Below, piece by piece: positions 44,116 through 59,312 of a stretch of 64,000 nt of DNA. Where the stretch lies: positions 2,531,176 to 2,595,175 of the forward strand of contig NW_003314269.1 of the NCBI RefSeq assembly GCF_000143415.4, read 5' to 3'. The notes under the pieces are model-generated. The model was given only the letters and a program-made list of their open reading frames with translations. It searched no databases and was not told the origin of the DNA. The position numbers and the translations under genes are program-made. Source of the DNA: Selaginella moellendorffii. Lineage: Eukaryota; Plantae; Lycopodiophyta. Each line of letters begins with the position of its first letter. Positions within the stretch are counted from its first letter, which is position 1.

Positions 44116-45593
44116 ATGAGAGGGAACGCGAGCAGGGAGGCCGTGATGGCGCCCGCAAAGGACTACTTCCAAGCTCTCCCCGACGCGCTCGTCTGCCGCA
44201 TTTTCGGCGAGATCGGGCCGCTCCACAAGATCGCGCCCTGCCGCCTCGTCTGTCACCGCTGGCGAATGCTCTTCCGGGGCGTCGACTACCTGGATTTCTC
44301 CTGCGCCGATCTGGTGAAGAAGGTAAAGAAGGACGCCAAGCGCGTGCCGCTGCTGGAATCCTTCATAGGGCGGACGATCGGCGCCACGACGTGTGGAGTC
44401 CAGGATCTCCACATCACGGGGCCCGAGTTTGGGGTCGGGGCGGTGTGCATGTGGCTGCGAGCGGTGAATTCCACGCTCGAGTGCCTCACTCTCGAGGAGG
44501 ACGGGGAGGGATTCGTGCAGATGGGCAACAAGCTTCTCGAGATCTTCAAGTGCCAGCTTCTCAAGGAGGTATCTCTCTCATACTACCAGATCGATCGCGT
44601 GCCTGGCGAAGCCACGCCGCTCAAGAGGCTCACGTCTTTCACCCTCAACGACGTGTGTATCACAGACGAGGCACTCGAAGGCATCATGGAGCTCTGCCCG
44701 GTTCTAAATTATCTCGACATTTGCGACTGCTCGGGGCTCAGGTCACCTTACATTAGGCACACGGAGCTCACCACCATCTTTCTCAGCTTCCAGGAGGCGC
44801 TCACCGTCTTCACGCTGTCTGCGAGAGGGGAGAAGGATCCCAAGGTGGAGGTGATCTGCGTCAAGTGGGTGACGAAGCTCGTCGTCAAGGCCAGTGGAGT
44901 GGGGAAGATTGTAGTGCGGTCTCCTTGCGTGATTGGGCTTCCAAGGGGATCTAGTTTAGAGAAGCTGGTGCTAGAATCAAGCGAGGAGGGGGAATGGACG
45001 CTGCCGGACGTGGCTGCTGCGATTGGTGGCCTCGAGAAAACTGCGATCAAGTCGGTCGCTATTCCTGCTGCATTGAACAAGATCGAGAAGGTTGCTCCGT
45101 TAAAGTTTTTCGGCTGCATGGCCAACTGGAGTGGGCTTGAGATTGGCGGTGATCTCTTCAAGGTTCTTCCATGTCTTTCTTTTACAAAAGCTTGGTTTTT
45201 TACAGTGTTTTCTTTGTGATTATGCAGTGTTTGAGGTGCTGTAGAATGGAGGAGCTCCCGGAGCTTCCACTAAAGAGAATTGTTATTCATATGCCGTGGG
45301 TGGACGAGAAGAGCCTGGAAGTACTCAACAATCTGGTCAGGAGATGTGCGTTGCTGGAAAAGCTGTCGATTTGCGTCAAGGACAAGTCCAAGGGATGGAA
45401 GTTTGCCGACGGCCTGCTGAAGCTCCAGAGGACGATGAAACAGGTGGAGATCACACTGAGCGAAGAGAGGGACGCGCAGAGCGAGCCAAGCGATGACAAG
45501 GACGAGGAGAACGAGGACGAGAGGATTGACGAAGATGAGGAAGACGAAGATGAGGACGACGATCAAGATGACGAAGACGAAGACGACGAATAA
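44116..45593 (+). CDS. F-box/LRR protein with an acidic tail (exons 44116-45162, 45228-45593)
   Basis: FQALPDALVCRIF...CRLVCHRWR; LRRs (ITDEALEGIMELCPVLNYLDICDCSGL); phase-0 intron. Confidence 0.88.
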
Positions 45594-45734
45594 ACGTAAG
45601 TTTATCTTTGTTTTCTCTCAGCGCTAGATAGGATAGGAGTTCTTTAATCTTTGTTTCCAGGGGATTCAAAGCGTTGAAACGATCCGATTCAAGGAAACCA
45701 AAACTGTTCTTGGCAGTGGTCCACTGTTTTTTTT

Positions 45735-46183
45735 TCAGGAATCCGGGAGAAGACTGTCGAGATACATGTTGAGAATGTATCGTCCAGTCGGCTGAACTTC
45801 GAGCTTCTTCGCGCTTGGAGCATACCTTCCTTTCTTGAGCTGGTATTGGTAGACGACGCCCGAGACAATGTAGGACTCTCCACTAACTGTGACTGTCTCA
45901 CCACATTGGGTGTTCTGGGAGGAAAAAATCGTTTTTTTTCTTAAGTGGAAGCTTTGTGCTTTCTTGCTTACCGATGGAAGGCAGTGTATTCCCAAGTTTT
46001 TGGGAGGTGGAGTGACAAGAGTGACCCTGTAGTGGTGAGAGTTCGTATCGGCTCTGTCTCGCCGCTTGCAAACCGGTTGGACGAGCTTGGTCTGGAAAGA
46101 TTCGCTATGAGAATCATTGTTTCCCTGGAATTGGGTCTTACCGATCGATTGCCAAGCATTGGCCGCTTCATTGACATCGCCAT
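45735..46183 (-). CDS. Small conserved plastid-type protein of unknown function (3 exons)
   Basis: MAMSMKRPMLGNRS|TKLVQPVCK..YRVTLVTPPPKNLGIHCLP|NTQCGETV..YQYQLKKGRYAPSAKKLEVQPTGRYILNMYLDSL; resembles a conserved green-plant/cyanobacterial DUF. Confidence 0.7.
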
Positions 46184-46559
46184 GGCGAGATCGAGCAGAT
46201 CGAGCAAACAAGCTTCAATTTTTCCAGCGGTGGCGGAAACAAATGTCCTAAAATTCGAGCTGCGAGAAGACCCAATGGAATGGGAACTCGTTTCCAGCAC
46301 CTGTGTGTTGAATTCTCCTGTGGCTGCGGCGGCGCTCCACTGCGACACGGCTACACATAGCTTTGGACACGAATATCTATCTCCCAGGCAAAGAATATTC
46401 TCCTCTGCGCGGGCATGAATATATCAGGCCGCGCTGGAGGCTCAATCCAACGCCACGTGTCTGGTAAAGAAAGTAACCTGAATAATCGCTTCATCAGGTA
46501 GGGAGGGGTAAAAACTTCATCTTGAGAAGAAAATATTCCTGATGTTCTTATTATTCTTA

Positions 46560-46977
46560 CTATCTAAGTAAATCACAAACAGGTACATTGATTTTCACCT
46601 GGTTTGAAGTAGTAGTTCCCAATGGACTTCTAAATTCTACACGCATGTATGGTTGTACTCCTTCGTAGAAACGCGCATAGCCTCCCATGAAACCATAAGC
46701 AATGCAGCTATTGTAAATTTGGGTGATAGCATTATTAAAATCGTCCAAAGCCTCTAGCTTGATACATTTCGATTGCTACGTATGCGGTACCATCTAGACC
46801 CTCGTAACGTCCACGCTGGAAATTGCTATTTACCAATTGTCTCCAGCAAAGTCCCTGTGCTCTACACATGTTACGTGGATCAGTATTTGGTGTTCTTCGA
46901 GCGAAGCAGCTAACAAACGGGAACTCTGAATAAGATTTAGAAACAAGAAATAAGAGTAAGACAATTCTAAAAAACAT
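46560..46977 (-). pseudogene. Small secreted Cys-rich protein, copy with an 11-nt frameshifting deletion
   Basis: Paralog of 48676-49101; AGAGGCT-TTGGAC versus AGAGGCTACTACGTAACCTTGGAC. Confidence 0.8.
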
Positions 46978-47126
46978 TTTGCCGGTACAGCCATTGCCAA
47001 AGAGATATTTATGAGCATAATAATACGACGAGAAAAGTTTTGACATTCCAAATAATTGAAGCTGAATGATTGCTTGAAATCTTGGCATATTCAAATTATT
47101 ATGAGATGAATATTAAATGATTTGTG

Positions 47127-48455
47127 CTAAACCATATTATCAATCTTTGTAAATATGGCTGCGCCACCTTCATGACAGCCAGGCATTTCATTTGATTTGT
47201 CGATAAGTTCTTCCTGAAAGTTTAGAACAATTAATAAGAAAAGGACAAGCGCGCACACACACACACACACACAGAGAAGTTTCACTCACTCTGTTCACGA
47301 AGCAAAGCTTTGTTGACTCAAAAGAATCTGCTGCGCGGGTGTAGTGTTCTGAAATTACGCTTGAAGTCAATCGGCACTTCATGAAGAAGAATGCGGTGGG
47401 ACGAACATTCACGCTCCTGCGAGAGATGCCAATCAGCTCCGCCTCGCTCTTCACACAAAAACACGCCCGAAAGATATGAACTCAAGAAGAAAAGAACGTA
47501 ATCCTGTTTGTTCCTACCAGGGACGACGCAGGAATCCCAGTCTCTTCACAAACTTCACGGACAATACCCTCAAACATCTCATCTGCGATCTTGTTGTTCA
47601 GTTTTTCGCTGTGATCCGAGTGGCCAAGGATACCAATCTCTGAAGGCTAGCAAGCAGCGTTCTAAACTTTGGGAATACATAAAAAATACAATGTGTACCT
47701 CTGAATGGCCACCAGGAAAGACCAAATGCCCAGGATATTCGCCTACGTTTGAGCTGCGCTGCAGTAGAATGATCAGAGAGTCTAGTGTTTCCACAATTGC
47801 ACCATTTCCCAGGGGGCTGGACGTGCGCTTGCATCGAAGAACATCATCTGGGAGGGAATCCCGCATTAAATGGATAACAATCTCGAGTCTTACCAGTACT
47901 TGGCGACAAGAAATTCTCCCACTTCGGTGACAAGTTCGTCCCAACAAAAGTTCTAGTTAAGAAGAGTTTAGATCTATCGAAAAAAGAAACGATCGATCTC
48001 AGACGCATACTTGTAGTCTGTCAGGCCGAGACGAAGGCATATTTGTTGACAATCGGGGGATAGATCATAGCCGCCATACTGCACAGTTCAACAAAGCAAA
48101 AGAGAGAACAAAATCACTAGAAAAGGAGAAAAAAAGGGGAGTTTTCTTCGAGATATTACTCTGAATTTGGTGGCATTGAAGAGAGATGGATTCGCAGAGC
48201 GACGTTGATCCCATATCTAAACAGCAAAAGATGAAACAAACGATTACAGAATGCATGTAATTTTGATTTTACGTCGTCAATGCTGGCTTCCAAGCTAGCA
48301 TCTGGATGTGGCTCTCGATCGTAGAGCGGCGAGAAATCCACGCAAAGCTGGGCAAGAGACGCGATCGGCATTTCTAGAGAGCGATCGCCATTTCTTACCT
48401 GAGAGCGGCGTAGCGGTGATGGCCACTGGAGTAGCACTTGGTATGCCTTGCCCAT
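47127..48455 (-). CDS. NUDX9: Nudix hydrolase 9-like (NUDT22 family), multi-exon
   Basis: DFSPLYDREPHPD, LRLGLTDYK|TFVGTNL, SSPLGNGAIVET, VFPGGHSE|P, REVCEETGIP, DSFEST, MPGCHEGG. Confidence 0.88.
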
Positions 48456-48675
48456 GGAATGAAGAACCCTAAATTGCCCATTTCTTGTCTCTCTAGCATC
48501 GCACGAGATGCCTTGCGCTGTCCTGTGCAAATATAGAACATCACAGTCACGAAGAAATAATCAAAAGTACGTATAACAAAGGTCAAGCAAGAAACATGGT
48601 GTGAAGAGAAGAAAACTCATGAAGAGAAAGGATAGGAGAGAGATTGAAACTTTAGATTATTATTTTTCCTCTCAC

Positions 48676-49101
48676 TCAAGCTAAATCACAAATCGGTCCA
48701 TTGATTTTCACCTGATTGAAAGTAGTATGCATTGCAGGACTTCTAAATTCGACAAGCATGTATGGTTGTACTCCTCCATAGAAACGCGCATAGCCTCCCA
48801 TGTAACCGTGAGCAATGCACGTATTGTAAATTTGGGCCATAGCATTATTAAAATCGTCCAAGGTTACGTAGTAGCCTCTATGTCGAAACATTCCGATTCG
48901 TACATATGCAGTGCCGTCTAGACCCACGTAACTTCCAGTCTGCAAATTGTTGCCTACTAATTGTCTCCAGCACATACCCTGTGCTCTACACATGGACAGG
49001 GGATCAGTATTTGGTGTTCTGCGAGCGAAGCATCTAACAATCGGGTCTGAATAAGATTTTGAAATGAGAAATAATAAAAGTGGGACGATCTTAAAAAACA
49101 T
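48676..49101 (-). CDS. Small secreted Cys-containing protein of unknown family (141 aa, intronless)
   Basis: Signal peptide MFFKIVPLLLFLISKSYS; 5 Cys; conserved with the adjacent paralog. Confidence 0.8.
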   Translation of the reverse strand: MFFKIVPLLLFLISKSYSDPIVRCFARRTPNTDPLSMCRAQGMCWRQLVGNNLQTGSYVGLDGTAYVRIGMFRHRGYYVTLDDFNNAMAQIYNTCIAHGYMGGYARFYGGVQPYMLVEFRSPAMHTTFNQVKINGPICDLA

Positions 49102-49359
49102 TTTGCCTATTTGTTGTGGCTAAAGAGATGTTTATGATCATAATAAAACGACAAGGGTGTCAAGCATAGTCAAGCCGTCAGCTTAAAAAAATAATAGATT
49201 GTAGAAATTTTGAAGTCTACAAATTATTGCTTGAAATCTTGGCATTTATATTGGTATAATCGTAATTTTCCCTAATTATTATGAATATTAAATAATTAAG
49301 TCATAGAGTCATTTTTATTTCCTGAAAAATGAAATCAATACAAATTTCTACAATTCACC

Positions 49360-49835
49360 CTCACAAAGCAAAGCTGTGTTGACTCAAAAGAATCTGATGC
49401 GTGGATGTAGGTAGTGCTGCAAAACCTCGCGTGAAGTCTGTCAGCACTTTATGAAGAAGAATTCGGTGGGACGAACATTAACGCTTCTCCGAGAGATGCC
49501 AATCAGCTCGGCTTCACTCTCCCAGTCTCTTGCGGAAAATTCTCTCAAACATCTCATCTACGATCTTCTTGTTGAGTTTCTAGTTGTGATCGCTGTGAAA
49601 CCAATCTCTGAAGGCTAGCAAGTAGCGTTCTAGACTTATATGGAAAGATATATGCGAGTATGATCCGAGCAAGAGTCTGGTGGACGTGTGCTTGCATCGA
49701 AGAGTCTTATTTGTAGTCTGTCAGGCCGAGACGAAGGCATATTTGGGGATAGAACATAGCCGAGACACATATCTACAAACACAAGCTATCTAATTTCCTT
49801 TAATGAAGAACCCTAGATTTCCCATTTATTGTCTA
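49360..49835 (-). pseudogene. Heavily deleted NUDX9 duplicate
   Basis: Ordered blocks matching 47290-47450, 47540-47670, 47818-47840, 48010-48075 and 48459-48495, including intron sequence. Confidence 0.85.
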
Positions 49836-49837
49836 GA

Positions 49838-50166
49838 ATGTCTACTTGGTTCCCTAGCATCGAGCCGATCAGCGTGGAGAATCCCTGGGAGTGGTCGATC
49901 GCTGCGAACGAGGAGGCGCTGCTAGCTCAGGAGGAGGCCGAGCTCGAGGAGAAGGTGAGCGCATTTCTTGACAGCTGCAGCATCAGGGTTTCATTTGGAG
50001 GGATTTCCAGTGGAACGAGATCAAGACTGCGAACGAGGGGATTATCCTGGGCAAGACGACGGCAGAGAACGATCCGGAGGAGTACGATCAAGATGGGGAG
50101 GAGGAGGAAGTCGACAATGTGGAGGAGGAAAGCGAAGGGGAAGAGTTTGAGCAAGAGACCGTTTGA
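49838..50166 (+). CDS. APC15: Anaphase-promoting complex subunit 15 (exons 49838-49954, 50011-50166)
   Basis: Spliced: MSTWFPSIEPISVENPWEWSIAANEEALLAQEEAELEEK|WNEIKTANEGIILGKTTAENDPEEYDQDGEEEEVDNVEEESEGEEFEQETV*; matches recalled plant APC15 motifs (EELLLAMEE..EEK.NEIR, IGK, EESEGEEFEQET) and the animal MSTLFPS start. Confidence 0.85.
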
Positions 50167-50192
50167 GCAGCTACAGTAGTAGTTTTTGTAGG

Positions 50193-52312
50193 ATGAGCTC
50201 CAAAGCGACCGATCGGGTCGTGATCCATCTGGTAAACTTGGTTCTTTTTCTTTCGATCTAGTATCTCTTCCTGTTTATCCCTGTTTTGATTTTCTTCTTA
50301 ACAGGATGTCGATTGCTTCTATGCTCAATCTGAGATCTTGCGACGTCCTTGGCTTCGAGATCGACCAGTCGGTGTCACTCAGGTGTCCTTTCTTTTTTTG
50401 TTGTCTTCCCATTTTTCTGTTCTAATTCTTTTGTTGGAATGATATATCTTGCAGAAGTTCCTTGTTGTTACTTCCAACTATGTAGCTAGGCAGCTTGGAG
50501 TCCCGAAAATGGTTCCTGTTGACGAAGCCAAGAGATGGTATGCTTTCAGTGCTGGTCTTTTTACTGTTAGACAAACATAGAATCATTTTGCAGTTGCTCG
50601 GACTTGGTGCTGATCAATGGAGAGGACCTCACGCCTTATCGGTATGCAAGCAAGCTGATCATGGAAGTCATCAAGAGATTCGGGACGGTTGAGAAGTATG
50701 TGCCTTAACTTTGCTTATGTATTTGCTTCTAAACGAATATTTCAGGAGAGGTCTGGACGAGTGTGCGGTGGATGTCACTGAAGAAGTTCTCAAACGCGTT
50801 GCAAGTGCCAATCCAACTTCTTTTGTCGGCCATGTACTCGGCGGTGATTTAACTACGCAAGCTACCCAGGGAGACCTATTGTTGATGGTGGGAACTCAGT
50901 TAGCTGCTGAAATTCGCTGCGCGGTTGAAAAAGAAACTGGCTATCAGTGCTCCTGCGGCATTTCTCACAATGTAAGTGCCTGCGTCATGAGTATCATCTT
51001 TGTCATTCTTTTGCATTTGTGCAGAAAATGCTGGCGAAAATGGCTTGCTCGCTAAACAAGCCAGATAAGCAGACCTGTATTACTCAGTCAGCTGTAAACG
51101 ATTTCATTGTTCCTTTACCAGTTCGCAAGGTGATCTTAAACATTCTTATGGAGTGCTTTTTATGTTTAAAGGAAAAGCTTTCAGATCCCGGGAGTTGGAA
51201 GGCAGACAGAGGCAACTCTAAAAGAAATGGGAGTGGAAACCATGGGAGATATGCAAAGTCTTACTCTGGCGCAATTGTCTTCCAAGTACGTAAAATGCAT
51301 TCTGTGAAAAGCTTAAATTTTTACATTGCTGAATGTAGGTTTGGGGATCGATTTGGAAACCAGCTGTTTGATGCATGCCGTGGCCACGACTACAGTCGTG
51401 TTCAAGACAAGGGCTTTTCAAAGTCTCTCTCGGTTGAGGATTCCTTCAAACCATGCTCTTCTCTGGACCAAGCAAAAGTAAGACTTAACTCGAGCTGCAT
51501 ACGTGTAACCTCTGTTTGCCTTCAGGAGATTCTAAGCTGTCTTGCTCCGGATTTGATTGCGAGGCTCGACGAAGACAAAGCCGAGACGGAACGTACACCG
51601 AAAACTTTTACAGTGAAATGGAAGTCTCGAGGGGTCTGGTGAGCGAGTGTTCTACTCCTTCTGGTCTTTTATCATAACTTGGAACTGCAGGAAATTCACG
51701 AGCACATCAGCTGGGATGCCTGCAGAGCTGCTATTGGCGACCGTGCCTTTGGGAAGAAGAACGCAAGTGCTGGTCGAGACAGGCTTGAGACTCCTTTCTC
51801 AAAGCCTCCAGGGTCGTGAGTTTTGCGTCCTTAACATTGGTGCAACAAACTTTATAAAAGATGGCTCTCCAAGCTCGGCAGATATACGCTCCTTCATGGC
51901 GAGACCATGCAACACACAGTCGGGCGTTTCACCAACCCAAGTTCGTGGGAAGAGACAGGCAAGAATCGAGAGAGAAGAATCGACACACATCAGCAAAGTT
52001 TCAGTGTGTATTCCTGCGAGCTCTTCCAGTCCAACCGAATTTGAAGAGGATGCGGAAGACGTCTCAGCGGACAGCTTTAAATATTCTTTTCAAGTTCCAG
52101 GGCCTGAATCGAGGAGGATTGGACTGGAAAATAATAGCTGCTGCTCCCAGTGTGGCGTGGAATTTCTAGACGAGCGAACGAAGCAGCAACATTTGGATTT
52201 TCACTTGGCTTTACAGCTGCAGAAGTCCGAGAATCGATGGCTCGATGCCATTACGCCTCCACGCAAGAAAAGACAACGAAATGGTACACTTGACTTTTTC
52301 CTGTTGAAGTAA
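50193..52312 (+). CDS. POLI: Y-family DNA polymerase, iota-type core with C-terminal UBZ, NLS and PIP-like box, multi-exon
   Basis: RVVIHL|DVDCFYAQ, RPVGVTQ|KFLVVTSNYVARQLGV, LVLINGEDLTPYR, GLDECAVDVT, GTQLAAEIR, CSCGISHN|KMLAKMA..NKPDKQT, SLSVEDSFK. Confidence 0.88.
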
Positions 52313-52522
52313 GGTGTACTCTTTGAACTCAAAAAATGCCATATGTTAATCTTCTGGATTGTAATCCATGGGTGGATGCTCTTCAACTATGCTAGTGGCC
52401 CTGAGAACTTTGTCCTCGGTGAATATCTTGAGCACAAATGGGGTATCGTCTGTCCTTAGAAGCTGCAAGGAGCACATTGATTATAATAAGGTTAATTTTT
52501 TTCTTTCAAATTATTATTTTTA

Positions 52523-52785
52523 AATATTGATATTATATTATTACCAATATAAGCTAAATATTAAATTATAGCTCATAATTATTCTCCTGATGTTGCAAAA
52601 GGACGGTTAAAATTAATTATAGTTTCCTGTCCATTTGAGTTGGTGGTGTTTGATTTGATGGGGCCTGCTGGCAATAAGTATGTCTTTATTACCTCTAACT
52701 ACTTGACTCAGTTATAATATAATATTTAGCTTATATTGGTAATAATATAATATTAATATTTAGCTTATATTGGTAATAATATGAT
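52523..52785. repeat. AT-rich inverted repeat of about 47 bp enclosing a retro-integrase fragment
   Basis: atattgatattatattattaccaatataagctaaatattaaattata pairs with 52714-52760; the spacer reads PFELVVFDLMGPAGNKYVFITSNYLT. Confidence 0.65.
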
Positions 52786-53858
52786 ACGAAGCTCTTACTA
52801 ATGTATCTACAATTATTTTTAGATACTTCCTCATCAATTGAGTAGTATTCTAGCATTCCTGTCCGGAATGAATTCTTTCAGATAATACTATGTCACTCAA
52901 GGAATTTGAAGATTAGAAAGAAAGTACCATGGAATTTTGAAACTCTATTTTGGCTGTGTTCTAAATTATACATTACAAATCCATGGTCTTTTAGTTGAAA
53001 AGGGCTTTTTGATACTTTGCTATAACATGATATAATGTATATTTTGTAACGCACTAGAATCTAAGAGGATTGAATTTCAAATTTTTCTCTAAACCTTTAG
53101 ATTTGAAGGTGTTTGTTTTACCAATAGTGGATGACTTTGAGGTCTTGATTTTGTGTAAACACCTATGCAGCCAAGTAGTTTCTAGTGAGAAACTCTTCCT
53201 GTCTCTTTCTATGACTAGAATCTTTTTATATAAAAAAAATGGTGTAGGGTCCTACAAGAGAATTGGAGCAAATTGTAAACTTTTTTTGCAAAGCTTTTTC
53301 TTCTATATCCTTAGTTGAAGTCAAGATGGCACTATTGTATGAAGTGAGGAAAATTGAAAAAGGTAGACATTGAGAAGAGGAGACATATGTTGAATAATAA
53401 ACTTTGTCAACTAACTAACATTTGCTTAGCAATTTCTAGTTCTTAAATAAAGTTATAACATGTCCAATGTTTTATATTTGAGTAATTTTTCTATTAGTGA
53501 GTGCATGGAATATGGAAATGGAATACAGAAATGTGCATATCAATTAGCTTAAACTATCACTCGCTCTTTATATACAGAAGCAATTGGTTTGGATTGAAAC
53601 CAATCTGACATTTATTAAAATCCCACTATGCTAATATTAATATATGGCATTATAATTGTATGCTTGGACCTTTTATAGTGGATGGGTTAGGATCTAGAGG
53701 AACATTAGGAGGAGGTATCAATGGATTTGTAGGTGGTGTCAATTGTTCATGCCTTTGTACAAAGCATTTCAGCCATTACACATGTATAATTTCTAGAGGA
53801 TTTGTTTGTTGGATATCATGCCAAACCTCATAAATTTGTGGTCTAATTTACCATAACT

Positions 53859-54451
53859 ATAAGCTCCTCGATTTGGACTTCCTAAAAGGTCACCCAACCT
53901 AATATTATTCAAACCCAAGGAGACTTAATCCCAAGTATCCCAAGGCCCTTAATTGATTAAAAAATGGGGTGCACCCTTATTCATGGGCTCTTTTATTTTA
54001 TATTTAAACCTCTATGGATCATCTCTTGAGTTTTTTTTTTTAGTTGTTTATAATCCATCACACTTTCTTGCAAGTTCACACCCTTGTGAATGAAAGTTGA
54101 GAACTGCAACTTTCCCAAGAGCCATGCTCTCTTGACACCCTACCCCTTGAGTCGAGCCTAGCTAGAGCAAAACAAACCTACCAAATATCAATTAACATGT
54201 GGTGCAATTCCCTTAAGTCAACCAATAAAGTCAAACTTAAAACCCCTCTAATACCAAATATAAACTCCTTGATTTAGACTTCTTGAGATTTCACCAACCC
54301 AATACTATTCAAACCCAAAGACACTTAACCTCAAGTATCCCAAAACTTTTAATCAATTGAACAAAAGGGTACACCTTTGTTCATGGGCTTTTTCCCTCTA
54401 TATTTGAACCCTTATGGATCATATTTTGAATTGTTCCTTTTGGTTGCTTAC
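53859..54451 (-). mobile_element. Cassandra-type TRIM (two LTRs of about 193 bp with a 5S rRNA-like segment, internal region of about 205 bp)
   Basis: Direct repeats 53859-54052 and 54258-54451; PBS-like tggtattagagg and PPT-like gtgatggat on the minus strand; LTR carries 5S A/C-box similarity. Confidence 0.8.
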
Positions 54452-54789
54452 AGTAGCACCCGATACGGTCCCTTCTATTAAACAATAAGCCCTTTAGATA
54501 AACCATGTACCATAAGATTGGGAAAACAAATTAACACTAAGTTATCCATTTTGTATTCTGCAGGTGGATGATGATGGGAGTTGTAGCATTATTGCTGTCC
54601 CACTTGTACATAGCCTAGGTTTTTGGCAAACTCTGCTTAGATAAGTGGAAGAATGTTTATCAAATACTAATCCTAAGACATAGCATTAACAGCTTTTGGC
54701 AATCATGAAGGTAAACTCAACTCTATTAATAGTATTGGATCATAACTATATAGGAGTTCATATGGTGAAGCACTAATAAAACTTTACAC

Positions 54790-56130
54790 TCTTATGACAT
54801 ACTGTAAGCGACTAAATTTTCCATTTTATTTTAGTCACTTAACCACACATTTGACTACTTGGAGGAGTCTCACTCACCACCTCCATAAGTCTTATTCTTG
54901 ACTTAGGGATATACTAGTCTTATGAATGGCATCTATACCACTCAACCTTTGCACTTGGTCTAAGTGCTTCACGTGTCCAATCCCACTATAGACACCCAAA
55001 GATACCATTGACATATCAACTTGTTATACTAAGATTATATCCATTCACTTTTGTCTCATTGGTAATCCAAGACCACCCATACTATAGACCCATCTCCCAA
55101 AGATTATGCCATCTATCCATAAGTAGTCATCCCTTGACCACACTTTAACACCCTTATGATGCCTAGAAACATGAGGAACACCCTTCTCCAATATCCTTCC
55201 ATTGGTCCCTACTAAATCCCACTTCGTCCTCAGTAGTGTTCACCAACCCTGCCACTGAGTAGGGCCCATAGGCCCTACCACCAAGTCCCATTGACCTCTA
55301 GGACTTCCTCACCACGTGACTATGCCCTTGATCACTATACAAAAAGTCCACTCTTCTTTCTTTCCACAGTCTGGGACTTTGGGATGACATTTCTAAACAC
55401 TATGGCCTTACGTGAGCCTCATGGGTACTCTCCCCACCTTCTACCTTTAGGTGCCCTAGCCATATGGCTATAGCAAGGTTTTGATGAGCCACACTAGATA
55501 TCCAAGTACGTAGTGCCACCCACACTTGGATTGGGACCATTGACCATTCAATTTCCTGGGGGAGCTAAAGATGGTTCTTGAACACTTCACCAAATTACCC
55601 CACTTGTCTATTTGCATTGACTTTAGCCTTGGACTCCTCAATGATTATTGTAAGCGACTAATTTTTCCATTCTACTTTAGTCACTTAACCACACCTCCGA
55701 CCACTTGGAGGAGTCTCATTCACAACCTCCATAAGTCCCAGTTACGACTTAGGGCTTGCTAGCCCCAAGAATGGCATCCATGCCACTCAACCTTTGCACT
55801 TGGTCCAAGTGCTCTACGTGTCCGATCTCATGACTGACACCCTAAAGTACCACCGACCTCTCAACCCGTTACGCTAAGGCCATGCCCATTTACCTTGGTC
55901 ATGCTGGTGGTCCAACACCACCTGCATTGCAATCCCGTCTCTCAAAGACTAAGCCATCCGTCCATGAGTGATCATCCCAGATCCACTCCTTAGCATTCTT
56001 AGGATGCCCACCGACATGGGGAATAGCCTTCCCCAGTATCTCTTTTCCAGTCCCCACCAAATCCCTTTCTATCCATGGCCGTGTTTGCCAACACTACCAT
56101 TGGGTCAAGGCCTGTAGCCTAGTGGTCAGC
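54790..56130 (-). mobile_element. Degenerate LTR-retrotransposon gag/protease remnants, internally duplicated (about 54800-55260 and 55645-56105)
   Basis: Repeated block gtaagcgactaa.ttttccatt.ta.tttagtcacttaaccacac; minus-strand LSGMDAILG protease-like motif; no intact ORF. Confidence 0.5.
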
Positions 56131-56149
56131 TCATCACCCAACACCTGAG

Positions 56150-57010
56150 TACAGCCTTCTTGGGCCAAACTGGCCTTTCCTGGCTAAACTGGCTCCATTG
56201 CAGTCCTCCCCCTCACTATACTTTTGGAGCTCACCAAACCCCCCAGGGTCGGGGAGACAAACGCTTTGGGCTTTCACCCTCTCAGACTCGAACTCAGACT
56301 TGGACTCGGACTCGGACTCGGACTCGGACTCAGGCTTGGGCTCGGTCTTGGCCTCGGCCTTAGTCTCAGTCTCGGTCCCGGTCGCAGTCTCGGTCCTGGT
56401 CCCGGTCTCGATCTCGACTTTGGACTCCATCTTGGGTCTTTCTCAGACTCCATCTCGGGTCCATCTCGGACTCTATCTCGGACTCCATCTCAAGTCCATC
56501 TCGGATCCATCTCGAACTCCATGTCGGGTCCATGTCGGGTCCATGTTGGGTCCATGTTGGGTCCATCTCGGGTCCATCTCAGACTCCATCTCAGGTCCAT
56601 CTTGAACTCCATCTTGGACTCCATCTCAGACTCCATCTCGGGTCCATTTCGGGTCCATCTCAGATGCATCTCGGACTCCATCTCGGGTCCATCTCGGGTC
56701 CATCTCGGGTCCATCTCGGACTCCATCTCGAACTCCATCTCGAGTCTATCTTGGGTCCATCTTGGTTCCATCTTAGACACTTCCATGTGTCATGTGTTGG
56801 TCCTCTTGTGTCCCTTTTCTAGAGACTCACTTATTGCTTGCTCCGTGCTTGTTCCTTGAGCACTTTGTTAGGAGTTCCACTCCTGCTCTTGATCTTTTAA
56901 GTCGGAGCTTTTAGTCCAAACGTGTTACGTTTGTTTGGTTTTCGCTTTGGCCACTACCACATGGCACCCTTCCGGCTCCACTTTGGGGCTTAGGGATTTT
57001 GTGTCTCACA
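56150..57010 (-). mobile_element. LTR-like repeat (family A) containing (ggactc)n and 11-12-bp gggtccatctc/ggactccatctc arrays; other copies end at about 59712, 60729 and 62585
   Basis: All copies end at gggattt(t)gtgtctcaca (TGTGAGAC on minus); shared gacacttccatgtgtcatgtgttggtcctcttgtgtcccttttctagagactcac. Confidence 0.7.
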
Positions 57011-57059
57011 ATTATATCATCACCCACTATGTGGGTATAACCTTCCTTGGTCACACTAT

Positions 57060-59312
57060 GTCGCGAATGTGACTTCGGGTATCGAAAGTTACCTGTCGGC
57101 AAGTCCTTACGGACACTCTTACCTTACTGCCACGATAGCAGGAGGTTAGTGTTGCTAGACCCTTTATCAGCCCCTCTTGTTCAAGTGTTAGTAAACTGGA
57201 CTTTGCATCTGTACTTGGCCGGATGAGCATAAAGACGGAATTCCTAAGTGTCTATTTAGCCAAGCATACTTGGCCTGGCTTTTTAGTTCTCTTTTGCTCT
57301 GTCTTGCACTGGCTTGATAAGAACCCTTGCGTATTGAGACTAATCCCTCAATATCGCTAGATGATAGCTTATCGTGTCTGCCAAACACCCTCGCTATCAT
57401 GCCCTTTGTGTTAGTCTCATTTCGGTCCCAAATACTATTTATGGAAAGTGTCCAGATTCGCTCATTTGGCATATCTATGGAATGTAGAGATCGGCCTGAA
57501 CACAATGGTGTTCGTCTCGTGTCCAAATTCACAATCTAGCACCATTCCATATTTAGTAAGTTTCGAGCTTGTCCCAGTAGTATAGGGATAGTAGTAGGGA
57601 TAGTGGGTAGGTCGGGCATGGCCGACCAACCTGAGGCATAGTTTAGCTCCCGCTTGCGTGCCTGTCTTTGTTCTGCATTCGGCTTGGGTCTAAGCCCAAG
57701 CTCCACACAATGCTAGTTGGTGGAGTACCCATATCCTCATGTTAGGCCACTGGTATGCCGAAATAGCGCCAGACTCCGTTTGGCTCCGTTTTGCGTGCTA
57801 GTCCTAGCATTAGGATGTTGGTTGCTCTAGGATTGTTCCAAGTCGCTCCGGGCTCCTGTCCCTTCGCTCCTTGGGCTATATGCTCGAGAGTTGCTCCGTG
57901 GTCTGGTTCCATCGCTCCTTGGCTCCATGCTTGGGAGTTTGGCACCGTTCCTTCGTTCAGTGGCCCAAGGCCCTGAACCTCGGGTTCTGCACCATTGTTC
58001 TTTGGACACGTGGCATATGACACATGGCATGTGTCACGTGGCATAAAGAGGGTTTAGGTTCTGCTTCGTGGTGTTATCCTATGGTAAATCACCATAGGAT
58101 GAAGGGTCAAAACCACGTGCACTACACACTAGCCGTTCTTAGCCAAATTGATTCCACTAGAGTCCTCCCCTTATTATCCTTTTGGAGCTCACCAAACCCC
58201 CCAGGGTCTGGGAGATGATCACTTTGGGCTTTCACCCTTGGACTCGGACTCAGTCTTAGTCTCAGTCTCGGTCTTAAATTCGGACTCATTCTTGGCCTTA
58301 GGCTCGGTTTGGTATGGGTCTTAATATCAATCTTGGACCCAGTATTGGTTTCCATCTCAGACTCAACTTTGGGCTCCATTTCGGACTCCATCTCTATAGC
58401 GCACTTGAATTTGGAGCCGAACTCCAAACCCGTTGTGTTATGAAATGAGGGTTCAGTACACTCACAATCCCACAACCACTAGCTCCCCATATTTAGCACC
58501 TACATGCTAAATGGTGTTAAACAGTGTTTAGCATGATTTTGGCATACCGGTGGCCTAACGCGAGGAGGAGGGTACCCCACCGACTAGAGCAGTGTGGAGT
58601 TTGGGCTTAGACCCAAGCTGGATACAGAAGAAGGGGCGACACAACCCAGTGAGAGCCAAACTAATGTCTCATGTGGTCAAACTTGCATTCCAACCACTAT
58701 CCCTACTATACATTTAAAACCCCCATAACCCCCGTACCGTTGAGGACACACGCTTTGGGCTTTCACCCTTAGCCTCCCTTAGTATCAGGAGTTAGTCTCT
58801 AAGACAAGTGTGAAACTTACTAAATATGGAATGGTGCTAGATCGCAAATCCGAATGCAGGAACAACACCATAGGGCTTAGAACACTCTATATTCTGTAGA
58901 TATGCCTCTTGGACAGATTTAAACATTTACCATAAATAGCATATGGATTCGGAACGGAATCAACATATAAGACATAATAGTGAGGGTGTTTGGTGGACAT
59001 GGTAAGTTACCATGTAACAATATTGAGGGACTAATATTAATATCTTGGGGGTTCCCAACACTAGCAAGTGCAAGTTAACAAGTGAGTTTCTCTAATCAAG
59101 TCAAGTATATTTGACTAATAGCATTTAGGAATTCCATCCTTATGCTCATCTGGTCAAGTGCACACGCAATGACCAGTTTCTCAACTAGCTTGAGTGGAGA
59201 CTATAAAAAGAACCAACAATACCAACCTCCTACCGTCATGGCAGTAAAGAAAGAGTGTCCATAAGGACTACCCAACAAATATCTTTCGATATTCGAAGTC
59301 ATATTTGTGACA
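57060..59312. repeat. Two oppositely oriented copies of a repeat of about 700-770 bp (57060-57765 and 58538-59312)
   Basis: tgtcgcgaatgtgacttcgggtatcgaaag versus ctttcgatattcgaagtcatatttgtgaca; gttaggccactggtatgcc versus ggcataccggtggcctaac. Confidence 0.7.

Follow-up and report, generated by a model that had tools for sequence, protein, structure and literature searches.

Is a small subunit of the anaphase-promoting complex/cyclosome (APC/C) expressed from the same messenger RNA as a translesion DNA polymerase in the lycophyte Selaginella moellendorffii? This question is raised by a stretch of 64,000 nt of contig NW_003314269.1 (hereafter the window, numbered from its first letter), in which a two-exon APC15 gene is followed on the same strand, after only 26 nt, by the start codon of a gene for DNA polymerase iota (Pol iota). 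A first-pass annotation of this sequence had proposed that one mRNA couples APC15 to the polymerase. Here, four RNA runs, one from each of four studies, each yielded a continuous contig, with all introns removed, that spans both genes, and to this extent the proposal stood; its further step, to a single molecule with both ORFs, is weakened by the fact that such contigs merge overlapping transcripts. With moderate confidence, we consider it probable that one bicistronic mRNA carries both APC15 and the polymerase. The features on which the argument is built are listed here in window coordinates.

49798–49837, plus strand: 5' leader of the putative joint transcript, with contig 5' ends at 49798, 49817 and 49829; contains AACCCTAG
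49809–49816, plus strand: telo-box-like AACCCTAG, from a motif search upstream of APC15
49838–49954, plus strand: APC15 exon 1, 117 nt, 39 codons; N-terminus MSTWFPS...; matches positions 2–39 of the ANAPC15 profile; spliced in the RNA contigs
49955–50010, plus strand: APC15 intron, 56 nt, GT..AG; spliced out in all four RNA contigs
50011–50166, plus strand: APC15 exon 2, 156 nt, 51 codons plus TGA at 50164–50166; acidic tail; matches positions 43–90 of the ANAPC15 profile
50167–50192, plus strand: spacer between the two open reading frames (ORFs), 26 nt; unspliced in RNA and the same in both haplotypes
50193–52312, plus strand: gene of 10 exons for a DNA polymerase iota-like protein of 535 aa with IMS, Pol iota thumb and UBZ domains
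50193–50231, 50305–50382, 50455–50537, 50594–50695 and 50746–50971, plus strand: polymerase exons 1–5, from the gene model and RNA contigs
51025–51129, 51185–51285, 51339–51477, 51526–51638 and 51691–52312, plus strand: polymerase exons 6–10, from the gene model and RNA contigs
52313–52395, plus strand: short 3' untranslated region (UTR), with contig 3' ends at 52336, 52340, 52358 and 52395

Is the upstream ORF indeed APC15? Starting from the ATG at 49838, the two exons encode a product of 90 aa with an acidic C-terminal tail. We scanned each exon separately against 24,736 Pfam families, and ANAPC15 (PF15243) was the sole family matched by either of them: residues 3–39 of exon 1 aligned with its profile at 16.0 bits (E 0.016) and residues 4–49 of exon 2 at 16.2 bits (E 0.014). 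Both matches are collinear and together cover the 90-position profile end to end, and their rough bit sum of 32, obtained from separate scans, compares with a curated cut-off of 27. The recovery of the same family, in the right order, from two separate exon halves among so many families is not a matter of chance. Thus, judged by its sequence, 49838–50166 is a two-exon ANAPC15 gene, for which family membership predicts a role as accessory subunit of the APC/C. The gene model, the Pfam matches and the splice seen in the RNA of four of four runs agree with the two-exon ORF and the stop at 50166 of the first-pass annotation, and the profile search whose failure it would have taken as a refutation returned the expected family for both exons.

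This gene is missing from existing resources. The part of the window from 44193 to 58312 is 100% identical to positions 2575368–2589487 of GL377573.1 (GCA_000143415.2) of S. moellendorffii, and in both haplotypes the NCBI annotation leaves the interval between a NUDIX gene, which lies upstream, and the polymerase empty. A query with the exon 1 region yielded no word-sharing candidate for the APC15 N-terminus in a collection of 15 billion proteins, and a PDB sequence search and an ESM Atlas search with the 39 aa of exon 1 were uninformative. Given the gaps in both the NCBI annotation and the protein collection, APC15 is an unannotated gene, and it was likely overlooked since it lies where the annotated polymerase gene would be expected to have its 5' leader. 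An earlier study describes APC15 in plants as uncharacterised (PMC7943633).

Are both genes present in one transcript? As RNA evidence we used Logan contigs, which are k-mer/de Bruijn assemblies, together with the presence of sequence words in individual runs. Across 17 RNA-labelled runs from 7 studies, a fraction of 0.50–0.58 of the sampled words of 49600–52500 was present, while arithmetic from the exon coordinates gives an expected fraction of 0.59 for the full spliced unit 49798–52395. We then mapped the contigs of four RNA runs, each from a different study, on 49200–52900, and in every case a single contig of 1898–2030 nt was the sole coverage of these 3.7 kb. All four contigs start 9–40 nt upstream of the APC15 ATG, run continuously through 50009–50230 (APC15 exon 2, the spacer and polymerase exon 1), have the nine polymerase introns spliced at the predicted GT..AG sites, for a total of 10 introns removed, and end 24–83 nt beyond the polymerase stop. 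The spliced model 49798–52395 measures 2030 nt, which is exactly the length of the contig of run X1. We then looked for words that mark retention of polymerase intron 1, including its borders (50215–50320). Only four runs contained them, namely one DNA-labelled run, two runs without a known type and a small RNA-labelled run, and the 17 main RNA runs with the spliced unit were not among these. An abundant APC15 mRNA that ends in polymerase intron 1 is therefore unlikely.

Several points weigh against a single bicistronic mRNA. Since k-mer contigs merge overlapping transcripts, a contig over two genes shows no single transcript, and since the depth given for a contig is an average over its length, any coverage step at the boundary of the two genes would be hidden. 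The 3' UTR found here is so short that an APC15 mRNA ending within polymerase exon 1 is physically possible. Moreover, the pairing is unconserved in the lineages sampled (see below), and selection for co-expression is no more than a possibility. On the side of translation, an A at -3 of the APC15 AUG and of two AUGs internal to it would make leaky scanning past them inefficient, reinitiation past a 90-codon ORF is usually inefficient according to PMC11291117, and the yield of polymerase from such an mRNA is uncertain.

The first of these points leads to a competing explanation, which we rate as doubtful, though it deserves to be taken seriously: two separate mRNAs could overlap by at least 31 nt and be merged by the assemblers, with the APC15 poly(A) site within 50167–50231 and the polymerase transcribed from a cryptic promoter in the APC15 intron or exon 2. 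Indeed, overlapping transcripts are inseparable in contigs, the 3' UTRs observed are as short as 24–83 nt and lack an AAUAAA close to their ends, and convergent coding regions nearby lie just 142 nt apart. However, TATA, E2F and other promoter-like motifs are absent within APC15, and the flanks are roomy, with ~1.4 kb upstream and >2 kb of AT-rich DNA downstream, so that a promoter is not forced into coding sequence. Furthermore, the main RNA runs contain neither an alternative contig nor RNA with intron 1, and all four contigs begin just 5' of the APC15 ATG instead of within the gene. We thus prefer the bicistronic mRNA, in which a single RNA polymerase II unit would be spliced to a message of ~2.0 kb with two complete ORFs, and the continuity of the contigs would be that of single molecules.

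Which promoter could drive such a unit? We searched 48800–50400 for TATA and E2F motifs and found none; the AACCCTA at 49809, part of the telo-box-like element that the first-pass annotation had placed just 5' of APC15, is the only proximal motif. Likewise, the 1.4 kb 5' of the polymerase ATG contain no E2F or TATA motif in either haplotype.

Could the two ORFs instead yield one fused protein? The polymerase ATG lies at 50193, 26 nt past the APC15 TGA, in frame +2 relative to APC15, and these coordinates hold as first described. Past its first TGA, the APC15 frame continues for nine sense codons up to a second TGA at 50194–50196, which forms an ATGA together with the polymerase ATG, again as noted in the first pass, and in the polymerase frame the 14 codons that precede the ATG contain no stop. 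Both arrangements would be compatible with an APC15-polymerase fusion through alternative splicing, frameshift or stop read-through, yet the remaining evidence opposes each of these routes. Splices within 50011–50231 are absent in all four runs, which agrees with the earlier statement that splicing does not fuse the frames; the polymerase frame is closed by a TGA at 50148; we looked for a slippery heptamer and found none; read-through of the first TGA would add only 10 residues before the next one; and the polymerase N-terminus, with 13 residues before the catalytic motif DVDCFYAQ, matches that of its orthologues. Taken together, these observations indicate two separate proteins, and we regard the fusion, ruled out by the RNA contigs and the frame analysis, as extremely improbable. 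Another candidate, an internal ribosome entry site or structured RNA in the spacer, was ruled out by an Rfam scan of the spacer, which matched no family, and by the folding of the spacer region, which was no better than that of shuffles (z = -0.62).

How, then, would the second ORF be translated? The AUGs that a scanning ribosome would meet upstream of the polymerase are the following.

49803, plus strand: AUG present in the longest contig only; ORF of 40 aa, out of frame, ending at 49925
49838, plus strand: AUG of APC15, with A at -3 and T at +4; 90 aa, stop at 50164–50166
50093, plus strand: AUG within APC15 exon 2, with A at -3 and G at +4; 28 aa, out of frame, stop TAG at 50177–50179
50117, plus strand: AUG with A at -3; 20 aa, out of frame, nested with the ORF from 50093, stop TAG at 50177–50179

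The TAG shared by the two nested short ORFs lies 13 nt before the polymerase AUG, so that the APC15 ORF and both short ORFs in exon 2 end 13–26 nt before it. The number of internal AUGs in APC15 (2 observed) shows no depletion relative to codon shuffles (2.9 expected, P = 0.38), and the signature of leaky scanning, that is a weak start context of ORF1 and an AUG-poor ORF1, was not found in APC15. Stops at such a short distance from the polymerase AUG, combined with the lack of AUG depletion, favour reinitiation over leaky scanning of the algal type, and the sequence thus points to translation of the polymerase by termination and reinitiation. We speculate that ribosomes initiate on APC15 in the usual cap-dependent way, at the first AUG in a good context, and that those which terminate after APC15 or the two short ORFs reinitiate at 50193 and in this way supply most of the polymerase, at a low level, to which leaky scanning may add a minor share. 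A low yield would fit an error-prone polymerase. By analogy with the bicistronic CDC26-TTM3 mRNA of plants, the early stop 5' of nine exon junctions would be expected to render the message sensitive to nonsense-mediated decay (NMD) unless ORF2 is translated.

Is the downstream gene correctly named Pol iota? Our model is 100% identical to RefSeq XP_024528028.1, 'DNA polymerase iota [Selaginella moellendorffii]'. The IMS core is recognized by PF00817 matches on exons 2 and 5, while the Pol iota thumb (PF21999) gives a weak match on exon 8 and is present in the precomputed annotation of the full protein; the catalytic motif GLDE is present in addition to DVDCFYAQ. Among the best 120 matches, all named animal relatives are 'DNA polymerase iota', and one Taxus entry also carries the UniRef name 'polymerase kappa'. 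In a tree that contains no eta or kappa outgroup, the clade of plant and algal polymerases joins animal Pol iota, with the Selaginella protein as the shortest of its clade and on a long branch. UBM motifs (PF14377), which are listed for many animal matches, are not listed for the Selaginella polymerase, whose tail carries a UBZ zinc finger (PF18439) in their place. At the C-terminus (window 52100–52312), this finger is followed by a basic stretch and then by ...TLDFFLLK, which resembles a PIP box, i.e. a PCNA-binding motif. A tail with UBZ and a PIP-like motif is in the style of Pol eta, whereas a UBM tail is that of animal Pol iota. Based on the best matches, the RefSeq name and the tree, we find the name Pol iota acceptable for this predicted protein.

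The comparison of the two haplotypes (GL377573 and GL377565) bears on whether the polymerase ORF is maintained. APC15 and the spacer show 0 differences in 355 nt, while the polymerase shows 14 differences, with 4 synonymous and 5 non-synonymous codon changes, and the introns carry 4 changes in 512 nt. The rough dN/dS of the polymerase is below 1, with counts too small for a selection test, and neither haplotype disrupts the 535-codon ORF. These data are relevant to another explanation of the joint RNA, according to which it serves essentially APC15 only and the polymerase ORF is hardly translated and drifting to loss. Three AUGs with A at -3 upstream of the polymerase AUG, the short protein on its long branch and the ratio of 5 non-synonymous to 4 synonymous changes would be in accordance with such a decay. 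However, the intact ORF, the precise splicing of nine introns, the retention of the catalytic motifs, the UBZ finger and the C-terminal PIP-like motif, and the rough dN/dS all speak for a maintained polymerase, and an intron-rich 3' region of 1.7 kb would expose a message serving APC15 alone to NMD. We therefore hold this explanation to be quite improbable and continue with an mRNA from which both proteins would be made.

As a side observation, one joint in run X3 (51123–51183) looks non-canonical, with CG..TC borders and TGTA inserted. Alternative splicing in this run was ruled out, as the joint is explained by single-nucleotide polymorphisms of the other haplotype at 51124 and 51126 beside a normal splice. 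Transcripts of the same structure thus come from both haplotypes.

Is the pairing of APC15 and polymerase common in plants? Orthologues of the Selaginella polymerase are present across streptophytes, and we examined loci or transcripts of two ferns, two gymnosperms, two liverworts and one charophyte, with S. moellendorffii as the only Selaginella species. Our tree places transcript L002 with ferns and transcripts L003 and L004 with gymnosperms, and APC15 was not found in the 157–192-nt 5' leaders of these three polymerase transcripts. In the Psilotum polymerase transcript, the ORF begins at nt 32 and no APC15 lies upstream of it. The Calypogeia, Marchantia and Closterium genomes contain no APC15-like sequence in the 7.5–10 kb upstream of the polymerase gene, as far as tblastn can detect it, given that this search is weak for proteins as short and fast-evolving as APC15. 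On the basis of these sequences, the pairing looks lineage-specific. The parallel to CDC26-TTM3 implied by the first-pass annotation fails at this point, as no APC15 was found upstream of the fern, gymnosperm, liverwort or charophyte polymerases.

The gymnosperm leaders also offer a hint at how the pairing may have originated. They contain canonical E2F sites, TTTGGCGGGA twice in L003 (35–95) and TTGGCGGGAAA in L004 (55–70), and the leader of L003 additionally carries a telo-box, AAACCCTAA. This composition suggests that plant Pol iota genes may be under S-phase or proliferation control. We speculate that, in the Selaginella lineage, the polymerase lost an E2F-type promoter of its own and was taken over by the APC15 promoter with its telo-box; with no E2F or TATA motif in Selaginella versus E2F sites in the gymnosperm leaders, promoter loss would be the simplest reading. 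L003 also has a predicted ORF of 64 aa (2–196) whose overlap with the start of the gymnosperm polymerase is an ATGA. As it has no APC15 similarity, it was ruled out as an APC15, and it seems to be no more than a stretch of the leader that happens to be open.

The surroundings of the locus show further features. Upstream of APC15, a tandem duplication of about 2.1 kb (46624–47450 and 48737–49520) comprises three direct-repeat blocks of 82–91% identity and copies a small minus-strand ORF (46735–47094 and 48676–49101) together with an apparent 3' end of the NUDIX gene. Its second copy, which stops ~300 nt before the APC15 ATG, is unannotated by NCBI. The convergent pair mentioned above consists of an F-box/LRR gene and a gene for 113 aa (about window 45593–45735), and the gap between their coding ends implies that local 3' UTRs are very short or overlapping. 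Downstream of the polymerase, ~2.5 kb (52400–55200) are very AT-rich, with a GC fraction of 0.29–0.39, and no RNA contigs were found over 52424–52900, the part of this region examined.

How does the APC15-polymerase unit compare with known multi-ORF transcripts? The closest relative is CDC26-TTM3 (Lorenzo-Orts et al. 2019, cited through PMC7943633 and PMC11291117), a bicistronic mRNA found from green algae to flowering plants, whose upstream ORF encodes another small APC/C subunit. In both cases, a small APC/C accessory subunit lies upstream of an unrelated enzyme, ORF1 is below 100 aa, the spacer is short and the early stop is expected to bring about NMD. The two differ in the subunit, which is APC15 and not CDC26, and in the partner, which is a translesion polymerase and not a triphosphatase. 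Moreover, CDC26-TTM3 is described as conserved from algae to angiosperms and as backed by single-molecule and protein evidence, whereas the APC15-polymerase pair is absent from all other lineages sampled and is known from assembled contigs. A further difference is that the Selaginella unit lacks the signature of leaky scanning.

The exclusively polycistronic loci of green algae, described in PMC11291117 with reference to an earlier Iso-Seq survey, rely on leaky scanning, with weak start contexts and AUG-poor ORF1. The locus in Selaginella resembles them in its independent ORFs in different frames, its short ORF1 (algal medians are ~290–600 nt) followed by a long ORF2, and a distance between ORFs of tens of nucleotides. 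Unlike them, APC15 has an A at -3 and two internal AUGs without depletion, and the host is a vascular plant. Read-through polycistronic transcripts, reported for 271 loci of Arabidopsis in PMC9768141, likewise join neighbours on the same strand, and NMD is said there to limit them. However, that study presents them as minor products beside normal monocistronic mRNAs at ordinary gene spacing, whereas the 26-nt spacing in Selaginella leaves no room for a normal terminator and promoter and the joint form is the sole one assembled. Our literature searches returned no prior report of an APC15-polymerase pairing. A more far-reaching proposal is that S. moellendorffii regularly uses polycistronic nuclear mRNAs like green algae do, with a promoterless polymerase translated only after APC15 by reinitiation over 13–26 nt; this is a speculative extension that we judge to be rather unlikely. 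If it were true, the amount of polymerase would be coupled mechanically to how much of a cell-cycle subunit is synthesised.

In summary, a layout with two ORFs on one message is rare for a land plant. The locus exposes a blind spot of annotation, as APC15 is missing both from the annotation of S. moellendorffii and from a collection of 15 billion proteins, and the geometry of its junction offers a small, naturally occurring system in which to distinguish reinitiation from leaky scanning in land plants. If confirmed, the unit would be the second bicistronic plant mRNA whose upstream ORF encodes a small APC/C subunit and, unlike CDC26-TTM3, an evolutionarily young one, which would show how such a unit can originate through the loss of a promoter and the use of that of a neighbour.

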